Shown here: one piece after another, positions 3,913-51,072 of the stretch
Position numbering within the stretch: position 1 is the stretch's first letter
Layout: each line of letters opens with the position of its first letter
From: Macrostomum lignano
Lineage: Eukaryota
DNA: 51,821 bases
NCBI GenBank assembly: GCA_002269645.1
Contig: NIVC01004284.1
Span: forward strand, 1 to 51,821
Direction of reading: 5' to 3'
Translations under genes and position numbers: made by a program
Notes under the pieces: generated by a model
What the model saw: only the letters and a program-made list of their open reading frames with translations
Database searches by the model: none
Told to the model about the DNA's origin: nothing

Positions 3913-4182
3913 AAAGAATCATAATGTTTGTGTTCTGATGACTCAAAACATTTCGACAGACTATTGATGGAGTTCGGGCCTATTAAAAGCAAAATCCAGC
4001 TCTTGATCCGATTGTCATTAAGAATGAAAGGCTGGAATTCTGCTCAGCGAATGTCGATTCGAGAAACTGTGATTACCCTGAATTCCTGTAAATAAACTGT
4101 ATGCGGATTGAGGAACCATTGCCAGACTTGCTGCTGAAATACTCTGTTATTTTAAAACAATGCAAACGTCAAACTGGTTTTT

Positions 4183-5825: not shown

Positions 5826-7056
<1,231 letters not shown>

Positions 7057-7059
7057 GCA

Positions 7060-7700
7060 TAGAGCATAGAGCTGTGCAGTGGAGTAGATGGCGCCCTGGC
7101 TTCTGCCAAGGAACAAGTACTCTTATAAGACTGGGAAATCGGTGGATCGCGGGGGATCGCGTGAAAGAGAGAAGAGGCCCGCGCTTGTAATGAGAAGTGA
7201 CGCGGGCGGAGGGACTGGACGGAGGCCATTAAGCCAGCAGAGCTGTGGAATATATTATCAGGCGCAATTGGGAGACGGGAGCGCCTCACTCGGAGTGTAA
7301 AACGGCCACCCCCTGCGGGCCGGAGAGCCACTTTGCTTCCGGCAGCAGGCCGTTTCTGCATCACGCGATCTCCCATAGCAGCCCCCTCAACCTGCGTGCC
7401 TGCCTCCTCGAAAGATGCCTAGAATTGGGAGGCTGAGAAGAGTGGCTAGATGGAGTAACACGCTTGGTGCGATATAGCAGTGAAGGTGGTGCGCGACAAG
7501 CTGGCTGCGGGAATTAGCTGGCCCTCCTTCTGCTTCAGCTTCTGCATCCCAAGAAAGAGAGATGGAGGAGGCGGGTGGCAGAGAGGGAGAAAGTGAGAAC
7601 CAAAGCGACAGTTGCTGGCAGCCGGTGGCAGGGGAATTAGCAATATCGAGTTTCACGAGCGACAGTTCCTTTGCCACTCCAGCGGTTTGCGTGCGACTTC
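7060..7700 (-). mobile_element. Possible degenerate 3' end of a non-LTR retrotransposon ORF2 abutting the (TATC)n tract
   Basis: Minus-strand translation RHFSLQARASSLFHAIPRD...SYK loosely resembles the SFS.....LFN.LP..I......FK C-terminal motif of CR1/L2-group ORF2. Frames are broken, so similarity is weak. Confidence 0.3.
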
Positions 7701-14865: not shown

Positions 14866-17342
14866 GCGTCAACTTGAAGTCAACACCAAAGCCTCCCCCC
14901 GGCTGATTCTTGCATCCGTTTTTTTCGCTCTGTGTTGGACTCAGAAAAAGAACTCGTGCATTCACCTTTGGATTGTTACCTAATTATAAACTTAAAACAA
15001 AAATATTCAATTAAAAAAATCTTCGAGCCCCCCAGTTCATTACTTTCTCTCCCACTAAGCAGTTCATCGATTTCTGTTTGCTTTTCTTCCCGATATCTTG
15101 TCGTTATCTTTGACACCTTTAATTGCTTTTTAATTGATATTAATTGCTTATAATATCAGCATGCTGATATATAAAAATAGCTAATCAATCTCACATTCTG
15201 ATTGATCAAACTTAGCTTATGTACTGTTTTTTTCGGAAAGCTGTTATTTATTAATTATCTCTTTATTACAGCTGCTTCAATATTTCGCAACATAGGATGC
15301 TATTAATTGCGCACGAGTGTTAGAATGCAAATGTATTAAGTAATCGATCGTTATTATTAATCTTTGTCGCCGTGTTTTGCAATTGCCCGCAACCCGATAT
15401 CACCATCATTTTAGCAATAAAAAATAAAGTAATATTAATGTTATAGCTTCATAAGGTGACTGAAGAAGCAAATTACTAAAATGATTTGTATTCTCGACTT
15501 CCTGTTCATAAACTAGCTCACATACGTGTGCAGGTGCATCAGCAGTGGCCGTAAAAATAAGATATCATTTTATAAATATTCAACTCAATTAAAATCACTG
15601 ACAGATTTTTAAAAGACGCAAATTAACTACCAAAATGTACAGTTCACTTATGTGGCTCGTATACATGTATGTATCGTACATTCTCAATCAGTCGCGACGC
15701 GTATAGCTTTTATGTTGTGTTTGCGCATGTACATTAATGTTTACGGCGTACACGTACACACACGTAAAATACAGGCTATACATGTATGTACTAATTTATG
15801 CTCAATAAACAGCTAGGCCAAATTATTTCGTGAGTTTAATGGCCACCTCTGCAAAAATAGTTATTTAAGCGCATCATCAGTACATTGAAAAATAAGAAAT
15901 GAATTAAATGTACACTACTGACAAAAAACAAATGTGATTTGTGACTTAAAATTTAATGGACGCAAAAAGCGTTTCGTTAAGGCCGACATAGGTCGGAATA
16001 AAGTCTGCAGACATTTCAGCTAGTAGCTATGCTCAACAATTTCGAATTTCATTTTTGCTTCCAAAATTCATAAAGTTGTTTGGCTGTTTAGCATATGTAC
16101 AGTAGAAATGATCGACAGGCTCATGCACAATTCCTTTAGTGGAATATACATGCATAAAAAGTGAAAGTGACAATTCAGTAGACTATAATTTAATAACTTC
16201 ATGAGTTTATTAAATTTTATTGGAAATACTTTGGAAATATGAATTGGAAATATTAAATGGAAATAAACGGAAAGCTGACGCGACTTAATTTGTAGATATA
16301 TGCGTGCGCTGTTCCTGAAAAATTGGAAAACGCGAAAATGCGTGTACAAACATCCCGACAAGGATTCCGACAACAAAATGATTTGAGAAATTTCAGTAAA
16401 CTATAATATTCTTCGTCGATAGAAGTTTTACTCTGCTGTACTCATGGCTTCTCGGTCCTGTCCTGAAATACCATGTATTTTCAGAGTTTATCCTTTTCAG
16501 GGCAATTCTGCACAGGGAATCATTTGATCAATGCAATAGAAACCACGAGCAAGCCGTATTATTAGTCAGGTGAGAATCAAACGTATAGTCACTATAGTCT
16601 ACAGTTTATGCTATGATATATGCTTTGATTTGTATGCTTGTGTTAGAAGTAGCTAGTCGTTAAAAGCACATGAAATTAAGTGCGTTATTAATGACCACTC
16701 TTTCTAGTATCGAAAAATGTGCCGAAATTGCAGCCTATAATATTTTATTCAATACGCTTTTTATTAAATTGTGCTGAGAGTTAGATTCAAAGGAAAATGA
16801 AAGCAGAACAAGTTTTTTACTTTGGACAAGCTACGTTCTGCTAGACAACAGGATTGGTCAGTCCATTGCTAAGTGCCTAATTCAACCACCAAATTAAATT
16901 ACTGTTTCTTTGAATATGGTACATTTAAGCAAACCGTCGAGGAGGGCTTCAGGCTCAACACAGCGAAGTGATAAAAATTGAAACTCACTACAATACACTT
17001 ATACCAGTGATTTAAATCGATTGACTTAAGGAAGGAAACATTTTATGAACCGCCTAAAATCTACATTTCCTGCTAGGGCCTAACTGCTATTTTGAGATGC
17101 TTTTAGTTTTGATTTCTATATAGGCCTAGCCGTTAAATAGACCATAGTCGGCCCTAGTTGAACAATACGTCAGCAGATTTTTTACTTAACGTTGTATTTC
17201 AGTAATGATGCATACTTGATATTAGCTATTTTAAAATTCAGGATTCGAAACCTTAGATCAAAATATAAATCTTCATCTACTCTGAGCTGAGCCTATATTA
17301 TCTTTCTAATCTAGGCCTAATATTAGCATAAGAACCAATAGG

Positions 17343-18043
17343 TAGAGCTGTCACGAGATCTCGACGAGACAAGATTTGAGACAAGATCTCGACATTTTTT
17401 CTCGTCTCGAGAAATCTCGAATTTTGTCAAGAAATTCAAGACGAGATTCAAGATTTTTTCCGATACCTTTTTCCAAAAGCTTTTAAGTGATAAAATATAA
17501 AAAGGGGAGCAAATTTTCATATAAATACAACTGTTTGTTGTAACACGCTTGATAGGGCAATTTTCAAATGGTAAAATCTAGCCAATGTCGAGCAGTTATT
17601 TAACGAACGTTGTTATATACGAGTTTGCATTGCATATGTGCTCTGTTGTTGTTGTTGTTGTATATGTGCTCTTTTAGTTATCATTTCAGTTCTGCAGCAA
17701 GGTGTATCATAGCAGACTTGAAGATAATCTACACAGGTCTTTTGACAAATTAGTAATAGACATAGTAGGGCCAAGGGCCTATATGCTACAAGCATAAATT
17801 CTTATGAATAAATAGCAAAGAATTAAAACTAGAATTAAGAAAGTATTCTGGAAAATCTAAAAAATATTTTTTTAGAATTGTATTTTATCAAGAAATTTAA
17901 GACAAGATAAGGCAAGATAAAAGCAAGACAAGATGCAATTCTGAAATATATTTTTTAGATTTACTTTGTCTTGTCTCGTCTCGAAATTCTCGACTTATAA
18001 GCCTTTCTCGTCTCGAATAAAATCTCTAATTTTGACAGCTCTA
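17343..18043. mobile_element. Non-autonomous hAT-like TIR element (MITE), 701 bp
   Basis: TIR TAGAGCTGTCA...TGACAGCTCTA; perfect 8-bp TSD CCAATAGG (17335-17342, 18044-18051); subterminal TCTCGTCTCGA/GAGACAAGA repeats at both ends. Confidence 0.88.
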
Positions 18044-20790: not shown

Positions 20791-21543
20791 AGATAGAGTA
20801 GATATTGATATTTCATTGATATTTTATTATAGAATTTTCTACAATGGTAGCTAGCATTTTTATAATCAATTTAACATATTGAGTTTGGAATCAGGATGCC
20901 AAATGACACTGGGATTGTGATGTAGAAAACTTAAGCTTATTTTGTATATAGATTCAATCTTGAAATTGGTTTAGAAATTTTTCTTTAGTAGCCAAACATT
21001 ACAGTAATAGACTAATAATTTTTTCATCTGTATTAACTGGAATTGACTGGTGTGTTTATTAGATTTTCTAAGCTTTCTAAATTTTCAGTTCAGGCTCTTT
21101 GGTCAAAGCCTAAAGAAACTTCATGTTCAAGATTCAGTAAAAATATCTATTCACAGGGATTTTGTATGCTTTTCAGTTTTTTTTAATTAACACTCAAGGA
21201 CATCATTGCTTGAGTTGTTAGAGAGGTGTTAATGTGTTTATAAATGAAAAGAGCACATTTTAAGATAAGTTGAAGTGGACTGATTGATAAAATAGTTTAT
21301 AGTATATTTGCTATATAAGTTTATAGCATGAAGTTATTCTTTTGCCAGACTCTTTTTGGTCAGTGCATGGTGGGTTAGCATGACTTCCCAACAGTCTCGG
21401 CAGTCTACAATCTGTACACAGCCAGCATGCTTTGTACAATTGTAGCGGTTTGGGAGTACATCTTGTACTTCTTAATACCTTTTTATTTTTGTACTAATGA
21501 AGCCTGGCTGTGCCGCTCCTGGTCAGTTGGGACTAAATCCATC

Positions 21544-24500
21544 ATGTCCAGCGAGCAGGAAATAGCACCGGCTGGCAATGCTGCCGCCGATGGCCAACAT
21601 CGGCCAGTCGCTGAAGATGCACAGACGATTGTCGAACCGGCAAACTCTGTTAATAACAATTCCGACGCGTCAGTTGGCGACGCTGACACTTCTGCCACCA
21701 TCGCCGCCCCAGCCAAGCTGAACGGGCTAGCAACTAGCGGCGGGATTAAAAAGAGTCAACGGGTTCGCGTCATGGGCGCCAGCGGCAAGCACAATGACAA
21801 AGACCTGGCCGAGATGTTTGGCAAATACGGCGACGTGGCGAAGATCGAGCCGCACAATTATCAGGAAGGCGTGCTAGTCGTCTCCATGGACTGCGTCGAT
21901 TCGGCCAATCGGGCGGTGGCCGAGCTGAACAATGTGGAATTCCAGGGCCAGAAGCTGATTCTCAATAATGATTCGGCTAACCAGCGCCGCCTTAATCAGC
22001 AGAGGCGGAGCGCTCCACCGGCCACCAGCCTGCCGCTTAGGGAGAATTATCCTCTACGCATATTGATCAATAGCGATCTGGTTGGCGCCATTATTGGCAA
22101 AGGCGGTGAAACAATCAAGGAGATTACTAATAAGACTAAAGCGCGAGTTGACGTTAAACGTGAAGTCGTGCAGAAGAATGCCCAGCCTAAGAAGGTCAGT
22201 AATTGCTAAAGTATACATCTTACCTACTGTCTTCTTTCGTATTAATAATATATATTTTTAAATATTTGCATCGGTCTATGGATTCAATTAATAGAGCATT
22301 ACAAACATTTGGTATGTGGGGACTAGTTGTCTTAGCCCCCTTTAGCGGGCAGTCATAGTTTAGAAAATTAGCATATTTGATGATAGCACACTGAGCTTGA
22401 ATACATTCTGAAAGTAATATTTTATTTAGAAATTTATTATTGTGTAAAACGCTACGTGCATAAGTTTACAGAATGGCTAAAAATTACACTGACACAAAGA
22501 CGAACCCTTATGACAGACCACAAAGAATTTACTGAGACAGAAGCTGATGCACTTACTAAGACAGCTATTTTGTCTTATACCTTGGCAGGCAGACAGAGAC
22601 AAAAAACAAATTATCTTAGACATTTAATATGTACAAATGAAAAGTTCCATACTCTATGTTTGTGTATCCCGTTGAAAACGTTACCGTGACAAGAAACGCT
22701 AAAGAGCCATTGCAAACAACTCACTAGTGACTCAAGCGACTCTTCTGAGGAGACTCTTTGGTGATTTTTTGACAGACCATGTGACGAAGAGGCGACTGTT
22801 GAGTCACGGGTGCATGACGTGAGTTTTAGAGTAAAAAAATGGTCGCGAAAAAATCGTCAAGGTCCCGCATTGTTTAATGCTTACAAGATCCCGAGGAACT
22901 TCCTCATTTAGACACCATTTCCCTCGGCCATTCAGCTAGGCTACAAAGCATTGTTCTCAAGACGAAATCGGACTTCAAAGGGATTTTTAATTTCGCGCAC
23001 CTGCTTCCCCCCTATTATTGCAATTTTTTCAAACATTCCATATTTGCAATACTATCATTTTTTGCAGAGCTCGCCGCGTAGTCCAGAGAAGGGAGACGCG
23101 ACTGAAGCAACGGCTTTGAGCGAAAGACTTCAGGTTAGTCGGGGAAAAATAATCTTAGATCTCTTTGATTCTGTCGTCATGTAAATCCACTTTCATTAAT
23201 AATGAATATGATTAGACTGTTGGCCCTTCTATCAATGAAAGCAATTCAAAATTCCAATGCTCTTCTCGTGGGCGGTCCATACTATATTTAGCCGACTTTG
23301 TGTTTTTGTGTAGTTTTTCCCCGATTTTTTGAACGAAGAATCGCTAATTTTATGCACAGATTGTCTTCGTGTACGGCTCGCCGGAGTCCTGCTCCGACGC
23401 CTGCCGCGAGATCATGTCCATCTGCATTGGCGAGGCCAAGGAGAAGGGCAAAGAGTAAGTCCTGTCTGTCTAGATCTGTGTGCGTTTAAACCCCCCCTCC
23501 AGTGGGGCTTAACACCGGCTTCAGAAGCTTGACATTTCCAGACTCTGCTGTCAACCCCTTCCCATGCACTATTTGTTGTTTTGAAAGTAAAATATCTCGT
23601 CCTATTCCACTGATTGCAGGGAGCCCGATCTTGGCATTCTGGCGGAGGACCGTTTCTGCGGACGGATTATTGGCAAGGATGGCAAAAATTTGAATACGAT
23701 TCGCGAAAAGTCTAAGACAAGCATACAGTTGTCCAAGTATGCAGTTTGTTTACATCAATTCATAACCGTGTACTCTCCCCCATTGTCTCTTTTTGCCTTT
23801 AACCCCTTGCTGCTTTTTGCCCTTTAGCCTTTCCCTCTTGTCTCTCCCTTGAGCCCCTTGTTTGTCCACTTGACCCCCTTGTCTTTCCCCTTGACCCCTT
23901 GACCTCCTTGTCTTTCCCATTGACCTCTTGCCTGTCCCGTTGACCCCCTTGTCTTTCCCCTCGACCCCCTTGTCTCTCCTCTTAAACCCTTGTCTTTCCT
24001 GTTGACCCCTTGTCTTCCCCTTGACCCCCTTGTCTTTTTCCTTGACCCCTTGTCTGTCCCGTTGAACCCCCTTGTCCCTTACATTGACCCCTCTTCTCTG
24101 TCCCTTTGAACCCCTTGTCTCTTCCCTTGACCCCTTTTGTCTGTCTCGTTGACCCCCTTGTGTGGCCCATTGACTTCCTTGGCTCTCCCCTTGACCCCCT
24201 TGGCTCTCCCCTTGACCCCCTTGTCTGTTACTTTGACCCATTGCCTCCCTTGATTTGAATAAGCGCCTCTGACAAAACGTTTTCTCGCAAAATTTTCAGC
24301 TCGCCCACCATAACCACCTACGATTCGAGTTCTCCAACATTCAGTCTTGACCGAATCATCACGGTAAAGGGCAGCTTAGAAGGCATGTGCCAGGCTGAGA
24401 AGTTCCTATCTGAGAAGCTGCGCCAGTGTCACACCATCGATATGCAACAGTACAGCTATGCGCCCTCCGTTAGCCAGGGCTACCCGGCTCCCTATCAGCC

Positions 24501-25803
24501 TGTCGAATTTGGTACAGTTTTGATTATAGATAGATAATTTTATAATTCTGTGCTACTCTACTTTGAGTAGCCTGTCTCTAATATGGCTGAATATAACTTA
24601 TTTGTAGGCTATCCGGCTCCCGTGCCAGGCATGCTGCCGGCCCCTGGGGCTCCGCTGCCCGGCTACTCGGCTCCCGGATTTCGCCTCGGCATGCCCGCCA
24701 ATCCTACGGCTGCCACGTTTGCGCCTTTGCCGTCGCCTTCGGCCGCTGCCGCAGCCCAATACGGCGCCGCCGCTATGCAGGCGCCAACGCAACCACCTCC
24801 TCCGCCACCGCCGCCGCAGCCGCTGCCGGCGCATCATCACCAGCAGCAGCATCACGGTGGCCATCTAGGCATGGTTGGCATGATGCCAATGGCGCCGGCC
24901 GGCCCGGCCATGTTTGCTCCTGCGCCGCCCCCGCCGCAGGCTGCTGTAGAAGAGATCCGATTGGACGAGGCCGTGTACATGCGAATCCCGCACGCCAGCG
25001 CCGGCGCCGTTATCGGATCCGACGGCGTTTCGATTAAGAAAATCATGGAGGACACAAAGACCTACGTGAACGTTAGCAAGGTGAACGTCGATCCGAAACG
25101 CGACGGCGAGCTGCCGCAAAGACTCGTGACGATCCGCGGCCCGCCTGGCAACCAGTGCCGAGCCCAGTGGCAAATCTTTCAACGAGTTCGCGCCTCGGTC
25201 AAGCAGCAGGAGACGCCGGACGTGTCCGAACGAGATTTGCGCCTGTGGACGGTGCTGCGCGTGCCTAAGAAGTGGATCGGCCGTATCATTGGCAAGCAGG
25301 GCAAGACTGTGCGCAACCTGCAGGCCACATCTGGCTGCATTATAAATTTACCAGACGAGCCCGATATGCCCGAGGAGCGGGATCAGAGTCTGGAGATTTA
25401 CGGCAACTTCGACTGCACTCAGCTGGCTCTGACTAAAATACGGGCACTTATTAGCCAGGCTCAGGTTCTGCACCAGCAGCAGCTGGCCGCGTCGCTAGCC
25501 TATCCGATGCCAGCCCCGGCTATGCATAGCTATCCGCCTATGCCGCCTGTCATGCCGCCAAGGCTGGCTCCTTACCCGGCGCCGCGGGCCGACTACATGC
25601 CAGCCCATGCCGCTATGCCGCCAATGCCCAGCTATCAGCCACCGCCTCCTCATCGGGGGCCGCCGCCTCCAAGGCAACAACAGCAGCAGCAGCAGCAGCC
25701 TCGCACCGCTGCTGGTCCCCCTGCTGTTGCGAACGGCCACGCCGGTCTGCCTGGAAGCAGCGGCGACGCGAAACAGCAGGCTAGTCCGCCCGTGCCCGCC
25801 TAA
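21544..25803 (+). CDS. IGF2BP: IGF2BP/Imp-like RNA-binding protein (RRM + four KH domains, Pro/Gln-rich low-complexity regions)
   Basis: Exons 21544-22194, 23360-23454, 23620-23736, 24300-24511, 24608-25803 join in phase with GT-AG sites. RRM-like segment (DLAEMFGKYGDV...ANRAVAELNNVEFQGQKL); KH loops GAIIGKGG, GRIIGKDG, GAVIGSDG, GRIIGKQG; YPLRILINSDLVGAIIGKGGETIKEIT and CRAQWQIF match IMP-family KH1 and KH3. Confidence 0.85.
23800..24240. repeat. Degenerate ~21-bp pyrimidine-rich tandem repeat (TTGACCCCCTTGTCTTTCCCC-like) in Imp intron
   Basis: Direct reading of recurring TTGACCCC(C)TTGTC. Confidence 0.85.
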
Positions 25804-31705: not shown

Positions 31706-32292
31706 CCCAAATCTCCCCAAAGACAGTCGCCATGGATAATCTCCCAATCGCAGTCGCCCTGGATAATCTCCTCAAAGACAGTCGCCCTGGATAATCTCCC
31801 AATGGCAGTCGCCCTGGATAATCTCCCCAAAGACAGTCGCCCTGGATAATCTCCAATGGCAGTTGCCCTGGATAATCTCCCCAAAGACAGTCGCCCTGGA
31901 TAATCTCCCCAATGGCAGTCGCCCTGGATAATCTCCCCAATGGCAGTCGCCCTGGATAATCTCCCAATGGCAGTCGCCCTGGATAATCTCCCCAATCAGA
32001 GTTGCCCTAGATAATATCCCCAAAAACAGTCGCCCTGGATAATCTCTCCAATCAGAGTTGCCCTAGATAATATCCCCAAAAACAGTCGTCCTGGATTATC
32101 TTCCCAAAGACAGTCGCCCTGAATAATCTCCCTAATCACAGTCCCCCTTCACGAGAGTCATTCTGGATAGTCTCTGCAATGGCAGTCGCCCTGGATAATC
32201 TCCCCACTGAGAGTCATTCTGGATAATCTCCTCAATAAGAGTCGCTCTGGATAATCTTCCAATGACAGTCGCTCTGGATAATCTCCCACTGA
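31706..32292. repeat. ~31-32-bp tandem minisatellite (CAGTCGCCCTGGATAATCTCCCCAATGG/AAAGA)n
   Basis: Direct reading; copies degrade toward 32290; explains the GDYPGRL ORFs. Confidence 0.93.
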
Positions 32293-32345
32293 CAGTGGGT
32301 ACTCCTACACCACACGCGACATCTCCTTGAGAAAAATCACCCTAA

Positions 32346-35184
32346 AGTCGCCCCGGCACTCGGGCATTCCTGCCTCGCAACACTCTGGCGAGCTGCAACT
32401 CCCAGCAGTCTCAGCGTCAGCGGCCGTCTGCGGCGCCCATAGTCGATGAATTCGACGGTGGCTGCGACGAGGACATCAGCGAGCTGAATGGCGAGCTGCA
32501 TAATTTCATCACCAGACTAGACGAGGCCTCAATCGTATACGTGAACAAGCCGCCAAAGCTGCTGCAAGATCGCTATTTAGTAGATGAGAAATTAGGCGAA
32601 GGCTCCTACGGCAAGGTGAAGCTGTGCGTTGACAGACAGACTGGCGACCGGCTAGCCGTGAAGATTGTGACAATCAGGCTGGTGCGCAAGATTCCGCAGG
32701 GTCTGGAGACTGTTGAGCGAGAGGCCGCCACAATGCGCCAGCTGAAGCACGTCAATACCGTCAGGTTGTACGCCGATTTCTCCGACGAGCAGTGCCAGAA
32801 ACGCTACCTAGTGATGGAGTTTGCCGTCTGCAGCATCCACGACCTGCAGTCCAAGGGCATGACAATGGATGCCGAATATTTCCGCTGCCTGCCGGAGTCG
32901 CAGGCGCGGCACTATTTTGCCCAGCTATTAGACGGCGTTGAATATTTGCATAATCTGCGCATTGTTCACAAAGATCTGAAGCCGGGCAATTTGCTGCTCA
33001 CAGCCGATCACACGGTTAAGATTACCGATTTTGGCGTTTGCGAGCAGCTGCCGGAGAGTGCGCTTGACGATACCATCACTGGCACTCAGGCTACACCTGC
33101 TATTCAACCGCCTGAGGTGAGTGTAGTTGGGCAAGGAGTTCTCCATGACTACTAAATGACAAACTTTTCACATTTCTGTCAGAGCTGCGAATAACGCAAC
33201 CGGCTATTGAGTATTTGGTGACATTTAAAATCCGAGTAAATTCTCGCAACCGGCTCTTGAGTATTTGGTCACACTTAAAATCCGAGTAAATTCTCGCAAC
33301 CGGCTCTTGAGTATTTGGTGACATTTAAAATCCGAGTAAATTCTCGCAACCGGCTCTTGAGTATTTGGTCACACTTAAAATCCGAGTAAATTCTCGCAAC
33401 CGGCTCTTGGAGTATTTGGTCACACTTAAAATCCGAGTAAATTCTCGCAACCGGCTCTTGAGTATTTGGTCACATTTAAAATCCGAGTAAATTCTCGCAA
33501 CCCCGGCTCTTGGAGTGTTTGGTCACACTTAAAATCCGAGTAAATTCTCGCAACCGGCTCTTGAGTATTTGGTGACATTTAAAATCCGAGTAAATTCTCG
33601 CAACCGGCTCTTGAGTATTTGGTCACACTTAAAATCCGAGTAAATTCTCGCAACCGGCTCTTGAGTATTTGGTCACATTTAAAATCCGAGTAAATTCTCG
33701 CAACCGGCTCTTGAGTATTTGGTCACATTTAAAATCCGAGTAAATTCTCGCAACCGGCTCTTGAGTATTTGGTCAGATTTAAAATCCCAGTAAATTCTCG
33801 CAACCGGCTCTTGAGTATTTGGTCAGATTTAAAATCCCAGTAAATTCTCGCAACCGGCTCTCGAGCCACTTTAATCTGACGGCTGCAACTCTTGGGCCCA
33901 GTTATAGCCGTCCGTTAGGCATGGAGCCACCAAAACTGCAACCGCCTGACCGTTGTAACCCGGAGAGCAGTTCACTAGAATGATGTTTAAAGAGGTGCAT
34001 CGGGTCGTGGGTCCGGTGCCGGGCAGTGAGAGGGGGTTCGCCGAACTTTTGCGCGAGCTCATGACTGCAGGCCTGCGCCCTCCCCCGAGCTGCTACTTTG
34101 CCAGTTGGCCACACCAGCAGGTCGCTTGACAGCACGTTGAGGTGAGCAGCTCTAAGCCAAGCTGCTCAAGTATTCAGTCATCATCCAGACGCCGTCGTCT
34201 CCTTCAACTGGTGACACAAAGTCTCAAGGAAAATCCCCCCTCCCATGGTAGTTCGACGGGTGGAAAAACGGCTTTGTATTTTTACTTAATGAAGAGCCTA
34301 GATTTGAGGCGGGCGGTCTAGCGCGGCACTCTTATGTCAGTCACATTAATTTGGGTTAAATTGGGATCTCGGCTTGGCTCTGCTCGTGCAATTAATGCCC
34401 TTAAGGGCCAACCCCCAAGGCACAGTGAAGTGTACATGCCTAAGGATAAATAAAGTTAGGGCCGCTGCACCCAGGTACATAAGAGCCAATTAAAATTGGT
34501 GAACTGGGCCAGCCTGGGTTAAATTGTGCCAATTTATACCAAACAAACCAGGTTGCGGACGGCAGCAAGCAGTTCTCCGGCTTCCGCCTGGACATCTATT
34601 GCGCCGGCGTGTGCCTGTACTTTATGGTGTGCGGCCGAGTGCCCTACAGGGAGAAGAATGTGCTGCTAATCTACGAGCGGATAGCCGAGGGTCGCTACAC
34701 CATCGAGAGCTGGGTTAGCGAGGCCTGCCAGCAGCTGATCGGGGCTCTCATGGCCTACAAGGCGACAGACAGGCCGGATCCGGCCAAGGCCAGGCAGTTC
34801 GATTGGCTTCAGAATCAGTCGGCGGCGCCAGTGCCCGGCCAGGATTGGATCCGGCTGGAGTCAGTCTGCGAAGTGGAAGACGCCGCGGCCACCGTTGCCA
34901 GGGTCCGGCAGGCATTCGAGGAACGAATGCACCGGCGCTCGCAGTACGAGACGCATGGGCTTAGCCTGGCCTCTGAGGCGGCGCTGACTAGCGAACAGCC
35001 GGACGACATTCTGGCCACTGACGACGAGGACGACGGCATCGATTTCAAAGCCGGCGGCGCCCGCTGCGGCCAGGCCTCCTCTGGCGCCTCCGCGTGCAGC
35101 GAAGCTCCGCCAGCCCCGCAGCCGCCAGCCGCCGCTCCCGCCGCCTCCACGGGTCGGAAGAAGCGGCGCTGCTGCCTATCCTAG
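32346..35184 (+). CDS. STK11: LKB1/STK11-like serine/threonine kinase (5' start not located)
   Basis: Frame open from 32346; FITRLDEASIVY, LGEGSYGKVK, AVKI, YLVMEF, HKDLKPGNLLL, DFG, QATPAIQPPE; intron 33117-34551 (GTGAGT...ACCAG); second exon VADGSKQFSGFRLDIYCAGV matches LKB1 IANG..FSGFKVDIWSAGV; ends in polybasic GRKKRR + CAAX-type CCLS. Confidence 0.85.
33192..33862. repeat. 50-bp tandem minisatellite (AACCGGCTCTTGAGTATTTGGTCACACTTAAAATCCGAGTAAATTCTCGC)n, about 13 copies, in kinase intron
   Basis: Direct reading; period 50. Confidence 0.96.
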
Positions 35185-38450: not shown

Positions 38451-39386
38451 TTGACTTCCAAAGATCATTTGAAGCCGGAAAGTTCGGAAAGTAAGAAAAT
38501 GATTTACTGCTTAAAAAAACATGAAAATCCATCTCGTTAATGCATGCATTGTAGCTAAGTTTGGAAGTGTTACGTCCTTTAACTATACGAGCTACCAGTA
38601 GGTCCTTGTCTTGAACTTCTTGTTAAATTTGCGCTCCCCTACTTGCGCACCGTGCCGTTAATCACCGGCCGGATGCGAAAATGCCAGCGCATTCCTTAGG
38701 ACGAGTTGGATAACAACAGAGCCCGAAGCTGCATTCATCATCTTCTGCAGCTTTTCCTCGCCGAATACGAGAGGACTGAGCCTTTTTGTTGTAAAAAATG
38801 GCCATTTTGTAAGTCCATAATTTTATTTATTTGCGTGCAAAGACATGGCAGGAGTTGGTGCGTTTTCCTGTTGCGGCTTGGCATCAAAGCGTTACAAAAA
38901 TAGAATTCTACTGCTCGTAGCTGAAACAGTGCAAGGAACTTTCGTCCCGGTTTGCATGCGAGGTACCGTGCAAGCTAGGATATAATTGCACCCCCATGCG
39001 ATGCGCTTAAACACAGACGTCTGGTTCGCGTTTTTCCGCTTTTAACCTTCTTCCCTTCGGAACCCTACGAATTCTTATCAACAAAATCGCGGCTGACTCG
39101 GAAAGGAAGTTTCCAACACGGTGAAGTCTGGGTTGTGGGTGCAGTCTGACAATTTACATCCTTGTCCGCCCTGCCCCAATACCCACCACATCCTGACAGG
39201 CCCGAAAGTTGCAAAGCCGGGGCCAATGACGGAGGGCCATCGCGGACGAAACCTGCGCCAGTCATGTAGTGCTTAAAGCTTTTTTACGTTGCACCAACCT
39301 CGATATTTAGATGCTTCCAGTGGAGGTATTGCTGCAAACACAAAGCGCAATTTGCAAAAATAGCATTGCAAAGACAGAGTAATCTA

Positions 39387-40966
39387 ATGATTCTGCAACT
39401 AGGCCTTCTGTTTCTGTGTCTCGGACACTTTGGTGTCGAGACAACATCGGTGCACGAGGTCGCGATTTCAGTTCGCAGTGTCAAATCCATTGTCTATCGA
39501 GGCATGCAACTGTCCATCTTTGAGCACGTCGAAATGCCCCGTCGCTACTTTTTTCAGCCGCTTAGCTTCCTCGACGCCGCCTCGGCACGTCTTGTGGACA
39601 ATTCCGAACTCAAGCTCACCGAACTCCATTTTGATGTTTACCTGTGGACTGACGAATTCATCCAGCTAGTTGAGAGCCACTTTGCCGAACACAAATCTGT
39701 GGAGCTGCTGCCTCTGACAGAGATCAGTCTGACCTGGTCAAAGCACGCATCCATGTGGCTCGGCGCTGAGTTCAATCGAACATACCGCCTACTGGATGAG
39801 TGGAAAGACGGCGACAAGCCGCATATGAGAAGTACATTCACCATCTTCTGCGACAAGCGTGACGCGTGCGAGCGACTGATGTCGAAGTTCAACCAAAGCA
39901 ACGAGGCGATCGGCAACATTTTCGATCTGAGGTACAAGATCCAGTGCGACAACTCGCGCAACTTCTCGCTAACCGTTCGCAGCAACCACTTCTTGCAGTC
40001 ATCCACATTTCAGCAATTGGACAAATTTGCTTCGCAACACGGCAGTGGTGAGGTTATTATATCTGAGCAGACTGTCGACCAGCTGGCCGACCAAGTGTAC
40101 ACTGCTGCTCTAGCTGATCTGCAGCGCGACGTCAAGCAGCAGCTGACCTCTGTTGACAGCAAGTCGCACCAAGCCATTCTAACAGACCTTCACCGTCACC
40201 TGCGCTCCAACCAGGTGCATCACTGAGCGACTTCCAGTGGAAAAGCAGAGTGTACTGGCCTCAGCACCGGGTCAGTCTTCGGCCTGACCAGTTGTCTCGC
40301 ATTTTCAACGAGCTGTTTAAGCCTTCTGCCACACAGCCTCGAATGGTAACGCTGCCGAACTCCGGTTCGCTGGCGTCTGCCGGTGAGACACTGCCTCCGG
40401 CTGAATTCGCCAAGATCAGCGCATTTGTGCAGCTCCACATCGGCCAGCGCAAAGGCTCCGATCAGCCTGTCGTCCCTGTCAACGAGGTCCACAGCCTGGC
40501 TGTTGAGCTGGGCAGCTATGCCGACTGGGATGTCGCTAAGCGGCAGTTCGTTCCGCCGCCATCCCTCATTCTGTTCCGCGTCGACCTGCTGTCAGTGCGC
40601 CGTCGTGGAATCTTTCTGATGCGCGACATTACCGTTAGCTTCAAGGTGTCGCAGCACATGGACCCGGTACACCCGCTGCCTAAGGACACGGAGTTCCAGA
40701 GCTCTCTGTGGCAGCGCCACTTTGCCGGCTCATTCTGCATCCTGGCTAACCGTGGCGAGCCGCCTGGCATGCAGTGCCGCGTGCTGTCCTACCTGTTGCC
40801 GACCAAGTCTCTGCAGCGAGAAATTCGCAACCAGCTGAGCTCGCCGCGGCCCAGCATCAGCTACAGCGGTGGGCACATCGGGCAAAGCCACTTCTATCAA
40901 GTCAACCCGGAGGAGTTTAGTTTCAGCATCAAGATATGTTGCACAAAGGACTTGGAGAACCCGTAG
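39387..40966 (+). CDS. Secreted protein of uncharacterised family, paralog A; intronless, interrupted by a 1-nt frameshift at ~40220 (526 aa if repaired)
   Basis: ATG 39387 (MILQLGLLFLCLGHFGVETT, signal-peptide-like). ORFs 39366-40226 and 40250-40966 are both colinear with paralog B; GTG CAT CAC TGA GC becomes GTG CAT TCA CTG AGC (VHSLS, as in B) by adding one T. Confidence 0.85.
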
Positions 40967-43800
40967 TGCGATAGGCTCGGATTGTCGGATCGAAAAAATG
41001 GTTAACATTTGTTTTGCAAATGATTTACATCAACGCTCGTATTCGATTAACTTCGAACTTGGCAGCGTTATTTTTAAAATCATCCGTATTGAACTACCGC
41101 ACCCACTAGTTAGTGCTTCGCACTTGATACTAGGTCCTGTCTGCCTCAAATTTCTATCATTATGGTAAAATGTGCGTCATCTTTTCTGTGTAGTTGCTTG
41201 TATTATTGGACCGATATTTTTTAACACGCCAGACCGCGTGCTCGTGTTGTCTTTTTGCATCGGGAATCACAGGTTTTTGTTCTATAACGTTATAGGACTT
41301 CCATTCTGTTATCTATTTCGCAATGCATATATTTAGCATTCGTAATCTATTATTATCTAGCAGAATGGTTTGAAGCAGACTTCTGTGACGAATTGCCAGG
41401 AAAGTATAAATATACAGGAGCAAATCATGCTTGGGTTCAGTGTGAGGGCTGCGTACAACACGACCAAATTTTTATCAGATACCAGATCAGACATTGGAAC
41501 ATCGCATGTAAACGAATCTAATAAACAGATGCTAATTAGCATTTTAATTTTCTGTTGGGCTATTAATGCAAAACTCAATTGTCAGGAAAAGCTAGTAGGC
41601 TTTTAGATATAATCCTTTTCTTCTGCGGAGCAGGGACAGTTTCTCTGAAAAAGTAGAAAACTAATGCCCAGACAAGGAGGGTCTACTTTGGTGCTGCAGA
41701 CTGTTATGACTTCGCACTCTATGAGTGCGCTAGCTATCTAAGATAGCTTTTTTAACTTTCTTTTCCCATGCAGACATTGCTTATAAATAACGCTGACGCA
41801 AATGCATTTACCGCAGCAGAGGGAGAGCGTGTCTGCAGGGAGTTGTCCATGGCAGGCAATGCTAAGCTTCACCCTTAAGCATTGACGAGCGGGCGGCGCC
41901 TGTCACTTGGCTATCAAACTTTTTCCCACTTATCGCGCAGCTCTGATGACTTACTTTACTTTATGCAGACAGACAACCGGTCGTCTGACCCGCAGAACTT
42001 TCCACCCGATCGTTTCCCTGGGGGGGGGGGTACTATTATTTTTGTTTCTTCTAGGTATTCATTTGATTGGCAGTCCAGCATACTTGATGCTGCAAAAGAC
42101 GGACAGTCGATATGTTTGCCTTCGCATCACAACTAGAAAGCTTCAGTCAGTCAATTATTTAACTAATGAAATGTTCCACTCTTTAAGCCCTTTGAAAGCG
42201 CCCACAAGTTGTGCGAATTCTTACGAAAGACACACTGCAGTATTCAGCAAATATAGCAGCGCAATCAGCATTCTTGAGTGACTGTGTCGCCCTTACTTTG
42301 TCTGGTTGGGGTCTGCATACAGCTTTAATTGTTTACGGATGTGGGCGTAAACACAAGAGCATCGGTACAATCGCAGGGTAGGTAAAAAAACTCGAGGCCT
42401 CGTTAAATACGTTTGCAGCTCTCAAAGCTTACTGAAGTTTATGCAGAAGCTTTCAACTGTCAACAGAAGCTAGGAGCTGTCTTAGTTTAAGGTGCATCGT
42501 AAACTTTTTTCAGGAAACTGGTAAGCAAAAATAGCTTTATTTATTGCAGATCCTTTCGGCTGCCGAAACAGTTAAGTCAGCTAATACACCAGCAGTACCA
42601 CTGCTTTATGCTTTATTTATGCTTTTAGTCGCACGCTATTGCCCCTGCTGCAGACAACAACTTTCAGAAGGAAATTCATAAAGTTACTCGAAAGCAACTC
42701 CTGTTGCACCTGTTTTGTTCCTAAGCTGCACTCGAATTCGCGCGGTTGTGTTGCCATAAAAGCTACTTTTTACAAGCCAGGACGCTGACATTTGGGTGAG
42801 GATGGATTGATTCCACAGTTGACATTGGAATCGGCCAACCGTCTGTCTGCTAGCAAAAAATCCAGCCAAATCTGCTGACCGCTTCAATTGATAAGTAGGA
42901 AACTGAAATGTCATCGAGGAACCTGCCGGTACCATTTGATTTTCTTAAACAATGTAGGGCTTTTGTTGTAGGCCTGTTTCGCTGCAATCTTCTATCGTTA
43001 AATTAACAAGCTGCAAATTGTATAGTTCCATTTTAGAGCATTGAGAACTTAGCAATTTCGCATCACATGATGCGCTGCTGGCCGCCGTTCCGAACTTTCG
43101 AGGGATTATTGATGTGAGAGGTAGTTCCTCCCCTGAAGGGTGTTGGTCCGACCGTCCGACGAGACTAACTAGGCGGAACTTTCCTTCAAGCGCCTGCACT
43201 CGCTCAACTTTCCATAGGCAGCGAATAACTAGATGGGTGCCTGGCGCCGCCAGTAATGAGGAAAAGGGGAACTTGGGCCCCAGACCCCCTTTCCCCTAGC
43301 AGATTGCAAATTCCAACGCAACGGGAGTGCGGCGAATTGCTAGCTGAGAGTTGGAGGTGCAGAGGCCAGATTGCCTGGCACCTCCCGCGGAGAAAGAGGC
43401 CAAGTAGACTTACAGACTCGCATTGTAGACCATTTCCGCGCCCCCAGCAACTATCACCAGCTGTTCCTTTCCAAATCTCCCTACAGTTGCAGACTAAACC
43501 AGTTTTCGGTGGGCCTTCACATAGTCATAAACCCAGGCGTGCACAGCAGGGATCCAGATCCCACATTTGGGAACAACTGGCGTCAATTAAACGCCCAATA
43601 CCAGGCCTATTCGCTCTCAGCCAAGTAATTATAAAGATTCTTGCGAAATTCCAACACTTCGGCCTGCATTCTTCACGCCCGAGGTTGTTACAAGAAACCA
43701 CTCATGCTATACAGAATTTGATTGCTAGTCACGTGATTCTGACATAACAGCCCGATGTGCGGGCGTTACCAAGGCAGGCTATCCAGCACCACCTGATCCC

Positions 43801-43808
43801 TATAAATA
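43801..43808 (+). promoter_or_regulatory. Candidate TATA box upstream of paralog B
   Basis: TATAAATA 83 nt upstream of ATG 43884. Confidence 0.45.
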
Positions 43809-43883
43809 CACAGCTGACCAGGAAGGGATACAGGCTTAAATTCCACACTATTTCTTAAAATCGAACAAAATCTGTGACCAAAA

Positions 43884-45731
43884 ATGTTTAACTGGAGGCT
43901 GCTATGCCTCTTCGGCTTCCTGCTAGGACACATCGGCGTCCACGCAGCATCTGTGCACGAAGTGTCAATCTCCGTGCGAAGCGTCAAGTCCATTGTCTAT
44001 CGAGGCATGCAGATCTCGGTATTTGAGCATGTCCAAACGCCTAAGCGCTACTTCTTCCAGCCCTTAGGGTTTCTCGATTCTGCCTCTGCGCGGCTAGCCG
44101 ACAATCCTGGGTTCAACCGCACGGAGCTTCACATCGATATTTACCTGTGGACTGACGAGTTCATCCAGCTAGTTGAGAGTCACTTCACCGAGCACAAGTC
44201 CGTGGAGCTGCTGCCTCTGACTGGACTCAGTTTGACCTGGTCGAATCGCGCATCTATGTGGCTCGGTCCCGACTTCAATCGAACATACCGCCTACTGGAT
44301 GAGTGGAAAGACGGCGATAAGCCGCATATGAGAAGTACATTCACCATCTTCTGCGACAAACGCGACGCGTGCGAGCGGCTGTTTTCGAAGTTCAACCAAA
44401 GCAACGAGGCGATCGGCAACCTTTTCGATCTGAGGTACAAGATCCAGTGCGACAACTCACGCAACTTCTCGCTAACCGTTCGCAGCAACCACTTCTTGCA
44501 GTCGTCTGTCTTCCAATACCTGGACCGGTTTGCATCCCAGCGGCCCGCAGATCGACAAGTGATAATTCCCGAACAGTCTGTGAATGAGCTGGCCGACCAG
44601 GTATACACGGCTGCGCTAGTCGAACTGCAGCGTGAGGCCAAGCAGCACTTCACCTATGTTGACAGTGAGTCACGCCAAGCCATCCTGGCTGATCTGCATC
44701 GCCACCTGCGCTCGCGTCCGGTGCACTCGCTGAGCGATTTCCAATGGAGGAACTACGTCGCCTGGCCTGCTGACCGCCTAGACATGCGCCCGGACAAGCT
44801 TGCGCACATGTTCAACGCTCTGTTCACGGCCTCCGACCGGCCGCTGACAGTGCAACTCACCAGCGCCGACCGGATGAACGAAGTTCGCGAGACCCTGCCA
44901 ACCGCCGAGTTCATGAAGATCGACGCGTTCGTCCGACGCTACACGCCCAGGCGTCCAACCGACACTGTGCCGATCCCAGTTACCGAAGTTCGCGACCTTT
45001 CGCTAGCACTTTCCAGCCCCGTTGTCTGGAATGTGTCCACCAATAGGTTCACCGCCTCGCCAAACAGCGTCATGTTTCGCATCAATATTGAGCAGATAAA
45101 GAGTGAAGGCACGCTGTTGATCCGCGATGTCCTAGTATTCTACAAGGAGACTGCCCATCGGGATCAGGTGACCCCGCTGGATCGCTCCAAAGGCGGCATC
45201 GAGACTACCTGGCGCGCACAGGCTGACCAGCTGGACACCAATCTGCAACAGCTGCAGCAGAAGGTGAGACAACTGGAGTCCAGCCTCAGGCGAGTCTCAT
45301 CCGAGTTCGACAGCTGGACTTCCGTGTACGCGCCTGGAGGCCGCGGTCCAAGTGGCGTCAACCTACGCAGCGGTGAAGCGCCGGTTGAGTTCTACCCACC
45401 GGTTGGCCCCAGAGAGGCCATGCCCGACCTGGCCGCCCTGCGCCGCTCCCTGGCCTCGCTGGAGACCCGGGTGGCCGGCCTGGCCGCTAACCGGTCCCGG
45501 CTCTACCAGCCGCGGTTCGCCGACTCCTTCTGCGTATTGGCTAATCGGGAGAACCCGCCCGGCATGACCTGCCAGATCCTGTCCATGATCATCCCCAAGA
45601 AGTCGCTGCGGTACAGTCCGATATTCGACAGGCGCATTCGCTACCAGGAGGGCCGCATCGGCCAGAGCCACCTGTCCGAGCTGAACGATGACTTTGTCGC
45701 TTTCAGCCTCAAGATTTGCTGCACCGCCTGA
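43884..45731 (+). CDS. Secreted protein of uncharacterised family, paralog B (615 aa, intronless): signal peptide, large N-terminal domain, coiled-coil stalk, Cys-bounded C-terminal domain
   Basis: Intact 615-aa ORF; MFNWRLLCLFGFLLGHIGVHA signal peptide; heptad-like LDTNLQQLQQKVRQLESSLRRV and LAALRRSLASLETRVAGL; C-terminus FADSFCVLAN...FSLKICCTA shared with paralog A; AATAAA at ~45961. Confidence 0.92.
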   Translation: MFNWRLLCLFGFLLGHIGVHAASVHEVSISVRSVKSIVYRGMQISVFEHVQTPKRYFFQPLGFLDSASARLADNPGFNRTELHIDIYLWTDEFIQLVESHFTEHKSVELLPLTGLSLTWSNRASMWLGPDFNRTYRLLDEWKDGDKPHMRSTFTIFCDKRDACERLFSKFNQSNEAIGNLFDLRYKIQCDNSRNFSLTVRSNHFLQSSVFQYLDRFASQRPADRQVIIPEQSVNELADQVYTAALVELQREAKQHFTYVDSESRQAILADLHRHLRSRPVHSLSDFQWRNYVAWPADRLDMRPDKLAHMFNALFTASDRPLTVQLTSADRMNEVRETLPTAEFMKIDAFVRRYTPRRPTDTVPIPVTEVRDLSLALSSPVVWNVSTNRFTASPNSVMFRINIEQIKSEGTLLIRDVLVFYKETAHRDQVTPLDRSKGGIETTWRAQADQLDTNLQQLQQKVRQLESSLRRVSSEFDSWTSVYAPGGRGPSGVNLRSGEAPVEFYPPVGPREAMPDLAALRRSLASLETRVAGLAANRSRLYQPRFADSFCVLANRENPPGMTCQILSMIIPKKSLRYSPIFDRRIRYQEGRIGQSHLSELNDDFVAFSLKICCTA

Positions 45732-47300: not shown

Positions 47301-48576
<1,276 letters not shown>

Positions 48577-48974: not shown

Positions 48975-49361
48975 ACAGTCAGTCAGTCAGTCAGTCAGTC
49001 AGTCAGTCAGTCAGTCAGTCAGTCAGTCAGTCAGTCAGTCAGTCAGTCAGTCAGTCAGTCAGTCAGTCAGTCAGTCAGTCAGTCAGTCAGTCAGTCAGTC
49101 AGTCAGTCAGTCAGTCAGTCAGTCAGTCAGTCAGTCAGTCAGTCAGTCAGTCAGTCAGTCAGTCAGTCAGTCAGTCAGTCAGTCAGTCAGTCAGTCAGTC
49201 AGTCAGTCAGTCAGTCAGTCAGTCAGTCAGTCAGTCAGTCAGTCACCCACTCACTCAAGTCAGTCAGTCAGTCAGTCAGTCAGTCAGTCAGTCAGTCAGT
49301 CAGTCAGTCAGTCAGTCAGTCAGTCAGTCAGTCAGTCAGTCAGTCAGTCAGTCAGTCAGTC
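48975..49361. repeat. (CAGT)n tetranucleotide microsatellite
   Basis: Direct reading. Confidence 0.97.
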
Positions 49362-49920: not shown

Positions 49921-51072
49921 AGAGTGCTAGTCCCTGTGTTGGTCATAGAGTGCTAGTCCCTGTGTTGGTCATAGAGTGCTAGTCCCTGTGTTGGTCATAG
50001 AGTGCTAGTCCCTGTGTTGGTCATAGAGTGCTAGTCCCTGTGTTGGTCATGGAGTGCTAGTCCCTGTGTTGGTCATAGAGTGCTAGTCCCTGTGTTGGTC
50101 ATAGAGTGCTACTAGTCCCTGTGTTGGTCATAGAGTGCTAGTCCCTGTGTTGGTCATAGAGTGCTAGTCCCTGTGTTGGTCATGGAGTGCTAGTCCCTGT
50201 GTTGGTCATAGAGTGCTAGTCCCTGTGTTGGTCATAGAGTGCTAGGTTCTGTGTTGGTCATAGAGTGCTAGTCCCTGTGTTGGTCATGGAGTGCTAGTCC
50301 CTGTGTTGGTCATAGAGTGCTAGTCCCTGTGTTGGTCATAGAGTGCTAGTCCCTGTGTTGGTCATAGAGTGCTAGTCCCTGTGTTGGTCATAGAGTGCTA
50401 CTAGTCCCTGTGTTGGTCATAGAGTGCTAGGTTCTGTGTTGGTCATAGAGTGCTAGGTTCTGTGTTGGTCATAGAGTGCTAGTCCCTGTGTTGGTCATAG
50501 AGTTTTAGTCTCTGTGTTGGTCAAAGAGTGCTAGTCCCTGTGTTGGTCATAGAGTGCTAGGTTCTGTGTTGGTCATAGAGTGCTAGTCCCTGTGTTGGTC
50601 ATAGAGTGCTAGGTTCTGTGTTGGTCATAGAGTGCTAGTCCCTGTGTTGGTCATAGAGTGCTAGGTTCTGTGTTGGTCATAGAGTGTTAGTCCCTGTGTT
50701 GGTCATAGAGTGCTAGGTTCTGTGTTGGTCATAGAGTGTTAGTCCCTGTGTTGGTCATAGAGTGCTAGTCCCTGTGTTGGTCATAGAGTTTTAGTCTCTG
50801 TGTAAGTCAAAGAGTGCTAGGTTTTGGTTGGTCATAGAGTGCTAGGTTCTGTGTTGGTCATAGAGTGCTAGGTTCTGTGTTGGTCATAGAGTGCTAGGTT
50901 CTGTGTTGGTCATAGAGTGCTAGTCACTGTGGGTCATAGAGTGCTAGGTTCTGTGTTGGTCATAGAGAGCTAGTCTCTGTGTTGGTCATAGAGTGCTAGT
51001 CCCTGTGTTGGTCATAGAGTGCTAGCCCCTGTGTTGGTCACAGAGTGCTATTTTGGTCATGAAGTGCTAGCA
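49921..51072. repeat. 26-bp tandem minisatellite (GTGCTAGTCCCTGTGTTGGTCATAGA)n, over 40 copies
   Basis: Direct reading; period 26; variants GGTTCT and CTA-duplicated units. Confidence 0.97.

Follow-up and report, generated by a model that had tools for sequence, protein, structure and literature searches.

What are the two neighbouring genes at positions 39,387 to 45,731 of contig NIVC01004284.1 of Macrostomum lignano (GenBank assembly GCA_002269645.1), to which protein family do they belong, and what could they be doing there? The window analysed comprises positions 1 to 51,821 of this contig, all 51,821 nucleotides read on the forward strand. A sequence-only reading had described the genes, here called paralogs A and B, as two colinear single-exon genes ~2.9 kb apart, encoding secreted proteins with a shared N-terminal region and the layout of a recognition or effector system. 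Our answer, held with moderate confidence, is that A and B arose by an old tandem duplication and belong to a family of secreted modular invertebrate proteins that has not been described before, and that extracellular recognition or defence is the most likely role of these proteins.

The colinearity of the pair was borne out, both genes being located on the plus strand with a spacer of 2917 bp between them, and B forms a single open reading frame (ORF); A, however, is split in the window by a frameshift. The two proteins share 63-64% identity, which is far above chance. On NIVC01000203.1 (locus L001), an M. lignano contig with 98-99% identity to the window, A and B also lie in tandem and are single-exon genes in the NCBI annotation. 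This contig encodes the intact paralog A (P0002, BOX15_Mlig030455g1, 526 aa), and its copy of B differs from that in the window by three substitutions. A further contig, NIVC01001952.1, encodes a protein exactly equal to window B, which is intact on three contigs or haplotypes.

The N-terminal domain and its relatives

A profile search with HMMER against 1.84 billion cluster representatives (E <= 1e-3) resulted in 34 matches. One of them (P0031) matched by its coiled coil only, and the other 33 aligned at query positions ~30-330 or 30-430. The family, defined by a profile match over the N-terminal domain (N-domain) of ~400 aa together with the motif series RY[FY]..PL / [FL].[VI].[ML]W / V..[LI]P.E..R / D.W / C.....C / W..V[FY]W.....RPD, comprises A, B and 33 database proteins. 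Every N-terminal motif listed in the sequence-only reading was found in the pair; in B the series is RYFFQPL, YLWTDE, VELLPL..LTW, DEW, FC.....C, FDLRY and W..V.W......RPDK. Common to the homologs are RY[FY]..PL...L..S, F.V.MW, V...P.EK.RL.W, D.W, C.....C, W.SVFW.....RPDK and W.G..F.PKP..L...NL. The residues P60, W141, C163, W288, W294, P303 and D304 (B numbering) are invariant, and certain F, V, R and N residues are nearly so.

The named members span six phyla and are all labelled as uncharacterised, hypothetical or unnamed. They include a third M. lignano paralog (P0003, 665 aa, three near-identical copies, UniRef A0A1I8J1X4), the acoels Convolutriloba macropyga and Symsagittifera roscoffensis, the bdelloid rotifers Adineta vaga, A. 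steineri, Rotaria sp. and Didymodactylos carnosus, the tardigrade Paramacrobiotus metropolitanus, the nematode Plectus sambesii and Daphnia pulicaria (XP_046658054, P0033). A resemblance to Daphnia proteins with a C-terminal C1q domain had been pointed out in the sequence-only reading, and P0033 confirms it: this protein matches the window profile and carries the motifs quoted there nearly verbatim, i.e. YFYSPIALLDH, VEMWND, VIPLEKVILT and MWDSVFWNEDNYRPDK, followed by the Pfam C1q domain.

In a word-indexed homolog search, B alone or the full-length alignment (A2) gave just two M. lignano proteins, evidently because the candidate lists were swamped by words from the head and the coiled coil. 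With the trimmed N-domain alignment (A3), 25 proteins were found, mostly from rotifers. Pfam assigned no family to the N-domain in any of the 34 members scanned and gave nothing significant for A and B, while NCBIfam and PHROGs yielded nothing meaningful for the core. PDB sequences gave no match to the core either, whether searched with the single protein or with the profiles A2, A3 and A4, and no paper describing the family was found in the literature search. These results agree with the sequence-only reading, which could not assign the N-terminal region to any named domain.

Two UniRef names were considered and rejected. P0001, a further M. lignano protein discussed below, is named 'Fmp27_GFWDK domain-containing', but A and B gave no such Pfam match at E <= 1 and no BLTP match in Foldseek, so that an identity as BLTP2/Fmp27 was discarded. 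P0003 carries a vitellogenin/LLTP name, but no corresponding Pfam match was found at E <= 0.1, and no lipovitellin or MTP match in Foldseek. Both names are probably spurious automatic labels.

Modular architecture and variable C-terminal heads

By inspection, A and B both begin with a signal-peptide-like sequence, as had been claimed for each protein, in which a hydrophobic core is followed by VHA-AS in B and by VETT-S in A. The typical n-, h- and c-regions could be read in A, B and most of the full-length homologs. Behind the N-domain of B follows a stalk, in which residues 442-482 gave weak Pfam matches to coiled-coil families, and then a module with four cysteines (4-Cys module) at the C-terminus. 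The stalk is present in B and most homologs. Paralog A joins the N-domain straight to the 4-Cys module without the stalk seen in B, which it has lost.

The 4-Cys module corresponds to the short Cys-bounded C-terminal domain noticed earlier. In both A and B it is ~75 aa long, with [FY]C, a Cys beside a PPG motif and a terminal CC, the latter being invariant among eight aligned family C-termini. No PDB sequence matched the module of the window proteins. It is common to the three M. lignano paralogs and the acoel-clade proteins, less clearly to Plectus, and is probably the ancestral head of the family.

In other lineages, Pfam identified different heads: NHL in a bdelloid rotifer (3e-24), phage tail collar in P0023, a protein grouped with the bdelloid members in the tree (2e-18), C1q in Daphnia P0033 (PF00386, 4.3e-18) and Link (Xlink) in the tardigrade (2e-8). 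For acoel P0007 only, a sub-threshold match to ApeC (PF16977) was obtained (E 0.0018; 18.6-20 bits against a cut-off of 26.5), which covers 22-25 residues at profile positions 70-95 of 208 and is situated at the WPAGSYCILKNGDCPPGF stretch of the acoel head. The constancy of the N-domain across phyla, while the head differs by lineage, supports a design in which a constant core would be combined with a swappable head. The earlier proposal of interchangeable heads on a conserved core is thus upheld across the homologs, where C1q, Collar, NHL, Xlink and 4-Cys heads occur, but not within the pair: A and B carry the same head, and therefore the swapping is between lineages. Neither a full-length hit to a known family nor a uniform C-terminal domain with a housekeeping-like spread, both named earlier as findings that would count against a new family of this kind, was encountered.

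Divergence of the paralogs and the frameshift in A

The identity between A and B is ~81% over residues 23-290 and ~44% beyond residue 290. The N-terminal region is shared, as described in the sequence-only reading, but homology is not confined to it, since the two proteins align over their full length. Synonymous divergence (dS) and the ratio of nonsynonymous to synonymous divergence (omega) between A and B were calculated by the Nei-Gojobori method per segment of B residues. The values of dS and omega were 1.53 and 0.07 for residues 23-119, 0.23 and 0.14 for 120-208, 2.05 and 0.12 for 209-300, 2.15 and 0.28 for 301-435, and 1.39 and 0.28 for 541-615. Because dS is mostly >1 and omega ranges from 0.07 to 0.28, the duplication is old and purifying selection has kept both copies. 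The head half of the window pair evolves ~3x faster than the core.

The segment of low dS is a tract of gene conversion. Third-position identity within this tract is 0.80-0.93, versus ~0.4-0.5 elsewhere, and dS is 0.23 versus 1.4-2.2. The tract includes several of the motifs quoted in the sequence-only reading (YRLLDEWKDGDK, FCDKRDACE and FDLRY), and the A/B identity found there therefore overstates constraint and inflates the N-terminal identity.

P0001 (UniRef A0A1I8G0.., 639 aa) follows paralog A to ~residue 208 and paralog B thereafter, and its switch point coincides with the 3' end of the conversion tract. Its start lies in the translated 5' untranslated region (5'UTR) of A, which suggests that it derives from a transcript. 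No contig encoding the chimeric protein was found. P0001 may be a recombinant allele, or else an artefact of transcript assembly in which A and B were joined at the identical stretch.

In the window, the coding sequence of paralog A is divided between two ORFs (39366-40226 and 40250-40966) that do not share a frame, and past ~40220 the B-like peptide SLSDFQW resumes in the +1 frame. The cause is a missing C, which lies outside any homopolymer and is the sole difference across 1581 nt between window A and the intact copy on NIVC01000203.1. As there is no other difference from the intact copy, the frameshift reflects an assembly error or else a null allele of very recent origin. The frameshift, the missing stalk of A and the conversion tract had all gone unnoticed in the sequence-only reading.

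Predicted structure of the core

AlphaFold prediction with only the three M. lignano sequences resulted in an unusable model, with a mean predicted local distance difference test score (pLDDT) of 44. With the 34-sequence alignment, the mean pLDDT increased to 81.7 and exceeded 90 across residues 30-430. The first part of the predicted core is beta-rich, contains beta-alpha-beta units and has a long hairpin (residues 181-200); the second part is helical (230-313) and ends at the W..V.W...RPDK motif; the third is another alpha/beta part with a long terminal hairpin at 410-428.

In Foldseek, the whole-chain model did not match any of 350,542 PDB chains (best E 0.057, template modelling (TM) score <0.15). 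The sequence-only reading had suggested testing for pore-forming or lectin folds in this way, and the test gave a negative outcome: no MACPF/CDC, aerolysin, actinoporin, other pore-former, lectin or lipid-transfer fold was found for the core among the PDB chains. The search against BFVD gave a single strong match, the uncharacterised protein A0A7S7YF07 (417 aa) of Medusavirus stheno T3, with E 5.2e-12 and a Foldseek probability of 1.00. The 464 aligned columns cover nearly the whole target, at 12% identity, TM scores of 0.30/0.42 and a root-mean-square deviation (rmsd) of 14 A, both structures being predicted. This protein was not recovered by sequence search. Viral relatives were also sought with a degenerate DNA pattern for W..VFW(5)RPD, and the 14 IMG/VR loci obtained were rejected, all of them being motif-only chance matches according to a hidden Markov model (HMM) check.

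Possible function

In the mechanism proposed here, the head would bind an extracellular target, which could be a glycan or the surface of a microbe or of the matrix, and the N-domain would supply a function common to all members. C1q and tail-collar heads function in trimeric form, and by analogy the stalk would make the protein multivalent. The N-domain would sooner be expected to bind, to assemble or to interact with membranes than to act as an enzyme, because the residues that are conserved across phyla (W, P, C, F and RPD) include none of catalytic type. Among the possible roles, extracellular recognition or defence is in our view the most likely, ahead of a structural role in the matrix, with a pore-forming or toxin-like effector in third place.

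A possible link to defence is offered by the D. magna gene 11F-21.35 (COLFI and C1q), which is under trans-species balancing selection, is located beside Pasteuria-resistance loci and is induced by Pasteuria (PMC11193740). This gene might belong to the Daphnia branch of the family; in the segment of P0033 that precedes C1q, Pfam found no COLFI.

Several points weigh against recognition or defence as the role of the pair. The heads of A and B have no known ligand and no match in Pfam even at E <= 10, ApeC and C1q included. The head repertoire itself does not prove defence, because C1q heads on coiled-coil stalks also occur in purely structural matrix proteins. Many of the database homologs are truncated gene models, and the census of heads is incomplete for this reason. 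The putative signal peptide and coiled coil were read from the sequence and from the AlphaFold model, and A is frameshifted in the window. Finally, Mlig030455 and Mlig006920 were not found in the full-text literature or in the supplements of M. lignano papers, and the search for data on expression, localisation or binding yielded none.

A structural role is possible, though we consider it unlikely. The proteins would then be components of the extracellular matrix or of a secretion (eggshell, cuticle, basal lamina, mucus or adhesive), in which the N-domain polymerises or anchors while head and stalk assemble. The order of an N-terminal domain, a coiled coil and C1q is of EMILIN type, Link domains bind matrix glycosaminoglycans, and the conserved residues are structural in character (W/P/C). 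The core is also under strong purifying selection, and a tree that follows the phyla fits a physiological role of long standing. In none of the 34 members, however, did Pfam detect EMI, collagen or another matrix domain, and recognition families are where one would more typically expect the replacement of heads by lineage, the tandem expansion and the faster evolution of the heads. The patchy distribution of the family also speaks against a core component of the matrix.

We regard it as improbable that the proteins are toxin-like or pore-forming effectors, comparable to apextrins and lectin-fused aerolysins. In that case the head would direct the N-domain to its targets, where it would act as a module of a new kind that damages membranes. 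The architecture does parallel that of toxins composed of an effector and a lectin, but no pore-former was matched in the Foldseek search of the PDB. The long amphipathic beta-hairpins of the model (181-200 and 410-428) would suit such a module; however, any soluble alpha/beta sandwich would be just as likely to contain hairpins with this alternation. The acoel head matches the WPxGxYC..G.CPxGF stretch of ApeC below threshold, whereas the window heads match ApeC nowhere. In Daphnia and rotifer members, long insertions of low complexity separate the RPDK motif from the last sub-region, a further feature that could fit an effector.

Origin of the pair

The lack of introns had earlier raised the possibility of retroposition or a horizontal origin. 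A single-exon or intron-poor structure is, however, common across the family. The genes of acoel P0007 (1647 bp for 548 aa) and tardigrade P0014 (1695 bp for 564 aa) are single-exon, P0005 is a single ORF, and the introns of A. vaga P0022 total only ~109 bp. One canonical GT-AG intron of ~434 bp is found in the stalk linker of P0003, the only intron-bearing M. lignano paralog, which is just 36% identical to the pair. As intronlessness is so common in the family, it is not evidence of a recent retroposition in Macrostomum.

Local duplication of the family genes was observed in several phyla. The tardigrade locus (L022, Paramacrobiotus, 6478-17710) contains three copies within 12 kb, and the acoel locus (L020/L021, Convolutriloba, 3055-11647) contains two divergently oriented copies within 8 kb, one of which is split across two frames. 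P0005 and P0016 share contigs as well.

In a neighbour-joining tree of the N-domain, the sequences grouped by phylum into M. lignano, acoels, Plectus, a Daphnia-like clade (~11 clusters), the tardigrade and the bdelloids. This grouping argues against recent cross-phylum transfer, which was rejected on these grounds. The tree is as expected if the genes descended vertically and expanded within lineages, or if each lineage acquired them once. Recent retroposition in Macrostomum is not indicated either, since the single-exon form is shared with acoel and tardigrade homologs, the tree follows the phyla and the paralogs are old (dS >1). At such a divergence, the flanking traces of a retrocopy, such as a poly(A) remnant and target-site duplications, would have decayed. 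For Macrostomum, the origin suggested from the lack of introns is therefore unsupported: the intron poverty is family-wide and the neighbours of the pair are ordinary host genes.

In the broader form of this explanation, which concerns origin and not function, the pair would be an insertion acquired horizontally from a virus or bacterium, or retroposed, instead of an ancestral animal gene; there is little probability of this. The single-exon or intron-poor genes of flatworm, acoel, tardigrade and rotifer and the patchy phyletic distribution would fit it. The Collar heads are of phage or bacterial type, but no prokaryotic or phage family matches the core, and the named HMMER matches are all animal. 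That the sole strong structural match is the giant-virus protein A0A7S7YF07 could point the same way, yet a transfer between virus and host could run in either direction. The N-domain tree is monophyletic per phylum, the old paralogs (dS >1) are flanked by intron-containing host genes, and the third M. lignano paralog has its canonical GT-AG intron, all of which argues against such an insertion. The GC content at third codon positions (0.69-0.74), taken by itself, is neutral on origin. The family as a whole may have had an ancient unusual origin, given its intron poverty, its patchy distribution and the structural match to a giant virus.

That the genes are non-functional pseudogenes or annotation artefacts, as the frameshift of window A, the lack of expression data and a possible transcript-assembly origin of the P0001 chimera might suggest, is very improbable and for B largely refuted, since B is intact on three contigs or haplotypes and A on NIVC01000203.1, omega is well below 1 throughout, the domain is kept across phyla and modelled with pLDDT >90, and P0001 begins in the 5'UTR of A, suggesting a transcript.

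Implications

If A and B do belong to a secreted recognition or defence family, a gap at the level of a whole family becomes apparent: an extracellular domain of ~400 residues, spread from acoels and flatworms to Daphnia, is without a Pfam model, a solved structure or a published name. The repeated fusion to known recognition heads would offer a handle on function, as the heads predict ligands and the core must hold the shared activity. The family is also experimentally tractable, by RNA interference, in situ hybridisation and transgenesis in M. lignano and by host-parasite genetics in Daphnia. Where the domain came from is a further question that can be put to the test, prompted by the structural match to a giant virus and by the intron-poor and patchy distribution. 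A more far-reaching proposal, to which we give a rather low probability, is that the N-domain represents an unseen extracellular effector or signalling fold of giant viruses and at least six invertebrate phyla, forming a new innate-immune class retargeted by head swap (4-Cys, C1q, Collar, NHL, Link). The family may still prove to be one more lineage-restricted family of matrix proteins.

Features and surroundings of the locus

The features of the pair are collected in Table 1.

Table 1. Features of paralogs A and B in the window (contig NIVC01004284.1).
Feature	Position	Strand	Basis or remark
Weaker ATATTTA before A	39303-39309	+	78 bp upstream of A ATG; inspection, function inferred
Paralog A gene	39387-40966	+	ATG at 39387, stop codon ends at 40966; two ORFs in the window
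A 5' coding part: putative signal peptide (residues 1-20, 39387-39446), then the greater part of the N-domain	39387..40219	+	Identical to P0002 residues 1-277; premature stop at 40224-40226
A deletion of 1 nt	40219..40220	+	Missing C in GCA[C]TCAC; alignment to NIVC01000203.1
A 3' coding part: rest of the N-domain, then 4-Cys module (~40706-40963) and stop	40220..40966	+	+1-shifted frame; P0002 residues 278-526; HMM matches
Candidate core promoter of B, TATAAATA	43801..43808	+	76 bp upstream of B ATG; inspection, function inferred
Paralog B ORF	43884-45731	+	615 aa, uninterrupted single exon; ORF listing
B putative signal peptide, residues 1-22, MFNWRLLCLFGFLLGHIGVHA followed by A	43884..43949	+	Inspection; AlphaFold helix 2-16, then low-confidence linker
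B conserved N-domain, residues ~23-435	43950..45188	+	33 remote homologs align; pLDDT >90; mixed alpha/beta, apparently three sub-regions
Gene-conversion tract, B codons 120-208 (~270 bp)	44241..44507; A partner ~39738-40004	+	Third-position identity and dS
B stalk, residues 436-541	45189..45506	+	AlphaFold helices 442-482 and 513-541, Pro/Gly-rich disordered linker between; gap in A
B C-terminal 4-Cys module, residues 542-615 (FC...PPGMTC...ICCTA), and stop	45507..45731	+	Alignment of eight family C-termini
Candidate polyadenylation signal AATAAA	45961..45966	+	~230 bp downstream of B stop; inspection, function inferred

The neighbours of the pair in the window are ordinary multi-exon host genes, in line with the earlier statement that the other genes are intron-rich. 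One is a kinase gene (32541-35184, with exons including 32541-33155 and 34609-35184), and on NIVC01000203.1 the pair is likewise situated downstream of a multi-exon protein-kinase gene. The other (21427-25803) encodes RRM and KH domains (an IMP/IGF2BP-like RNA-binding protein) and lies within an AT-rich region (flank GC ~0.27-0.35). Tandem arrays with 28/56-bp and 50-bp units (13 copies, 95% matches) are located upstream of and inside the kinase gene (31710-32296 and 33195-33865), and their copy number differs from that at L001.

The spacer between A and B is ~410 bp shorter in the window (42310-42322) than on NIVC01000203.1 (L001 12975-13386), as a haplotype, homeolog or assembly indel. Downstream of the pair, a (CT)n microsatellite of ~1.27 kb (47303-48575) yields a spurious ORF of 458 aa and makes the GC/AT skew extreme. 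Beyond it come (CAGT)x96 and a minisatellite with 43 copies of a 26-bp unit (48976-49361 and 49921-51050). At 5363-7376, a region of strong GC and AT skew, several long ORFs overlap, those of 565, 440 and 406 aa being on the minus strand and those of 231 and 225 aa on the plus strand. These ORFs had no Pfam match, and the region looks low-complexity or repetitive rather than genic.

Comparison with known systems

The closest parallels in layout are the secreted C1q-domain and collectin/ficolin-type proteins of invertebrates, whose signal peptide, oligomerising stalk and C-terminal ligand-binding head have putative counterparts in the family, and which likewise show lineage-specific tandem expansion; Daphnia P0033 itself bears a gC1q head. 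Unlike these proteins, which have a short N-terminal segment, the family is dominated by its N-domain of ~400 aa without a known fold, and the window proteins are without a C1q, collagen, fibrinogen or C-type lectin domain.

Apextrin-like proteins carry MACPF and/or ApeC, and ApeC of amphioxus binds bacterial peptidoglycan. They are secreted, as the family is predicted to be, and resemble it in combining a large N-terminal module with a Cys-containing C-terminal recognition module. They differ from it in that the window heads have no ApeC match, the 4-Cys module measures ~75 aa versus ~200 aa for ApeC, and no MACPF fold is present. EMILIN, multimerin and otolin show the same module order of N-terminal domain, coiled-coil stalk and globular head. 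In contrast to these matrix proteins, EMI (0/34 members) and collagen are absent from the family, the N-domain is unrelated in sequence, and the head is variable instead of fixed.

At the level of the predicted structure, the Medusavirus protein A0A7S7YF07 is similar over nearly its whole length, though the 12% identity and the rmsd of 14 A set the two apart. TRIM proteins also combine a constant N-terminal module and a coiled coil with a C-terminal binding domain that varies by lineage, and NHL heads occur in the rotifer members. The likeness is architectural only, TRIM proteins being cytosolic RING E3 ligases, whereas the family is predicted to be secreted and is without RING or B-box. What is new in A and B is a core domain with no detectable known relative, and what is known is the logic by which a constant module is joined through a stalk to a swappable recognition head.

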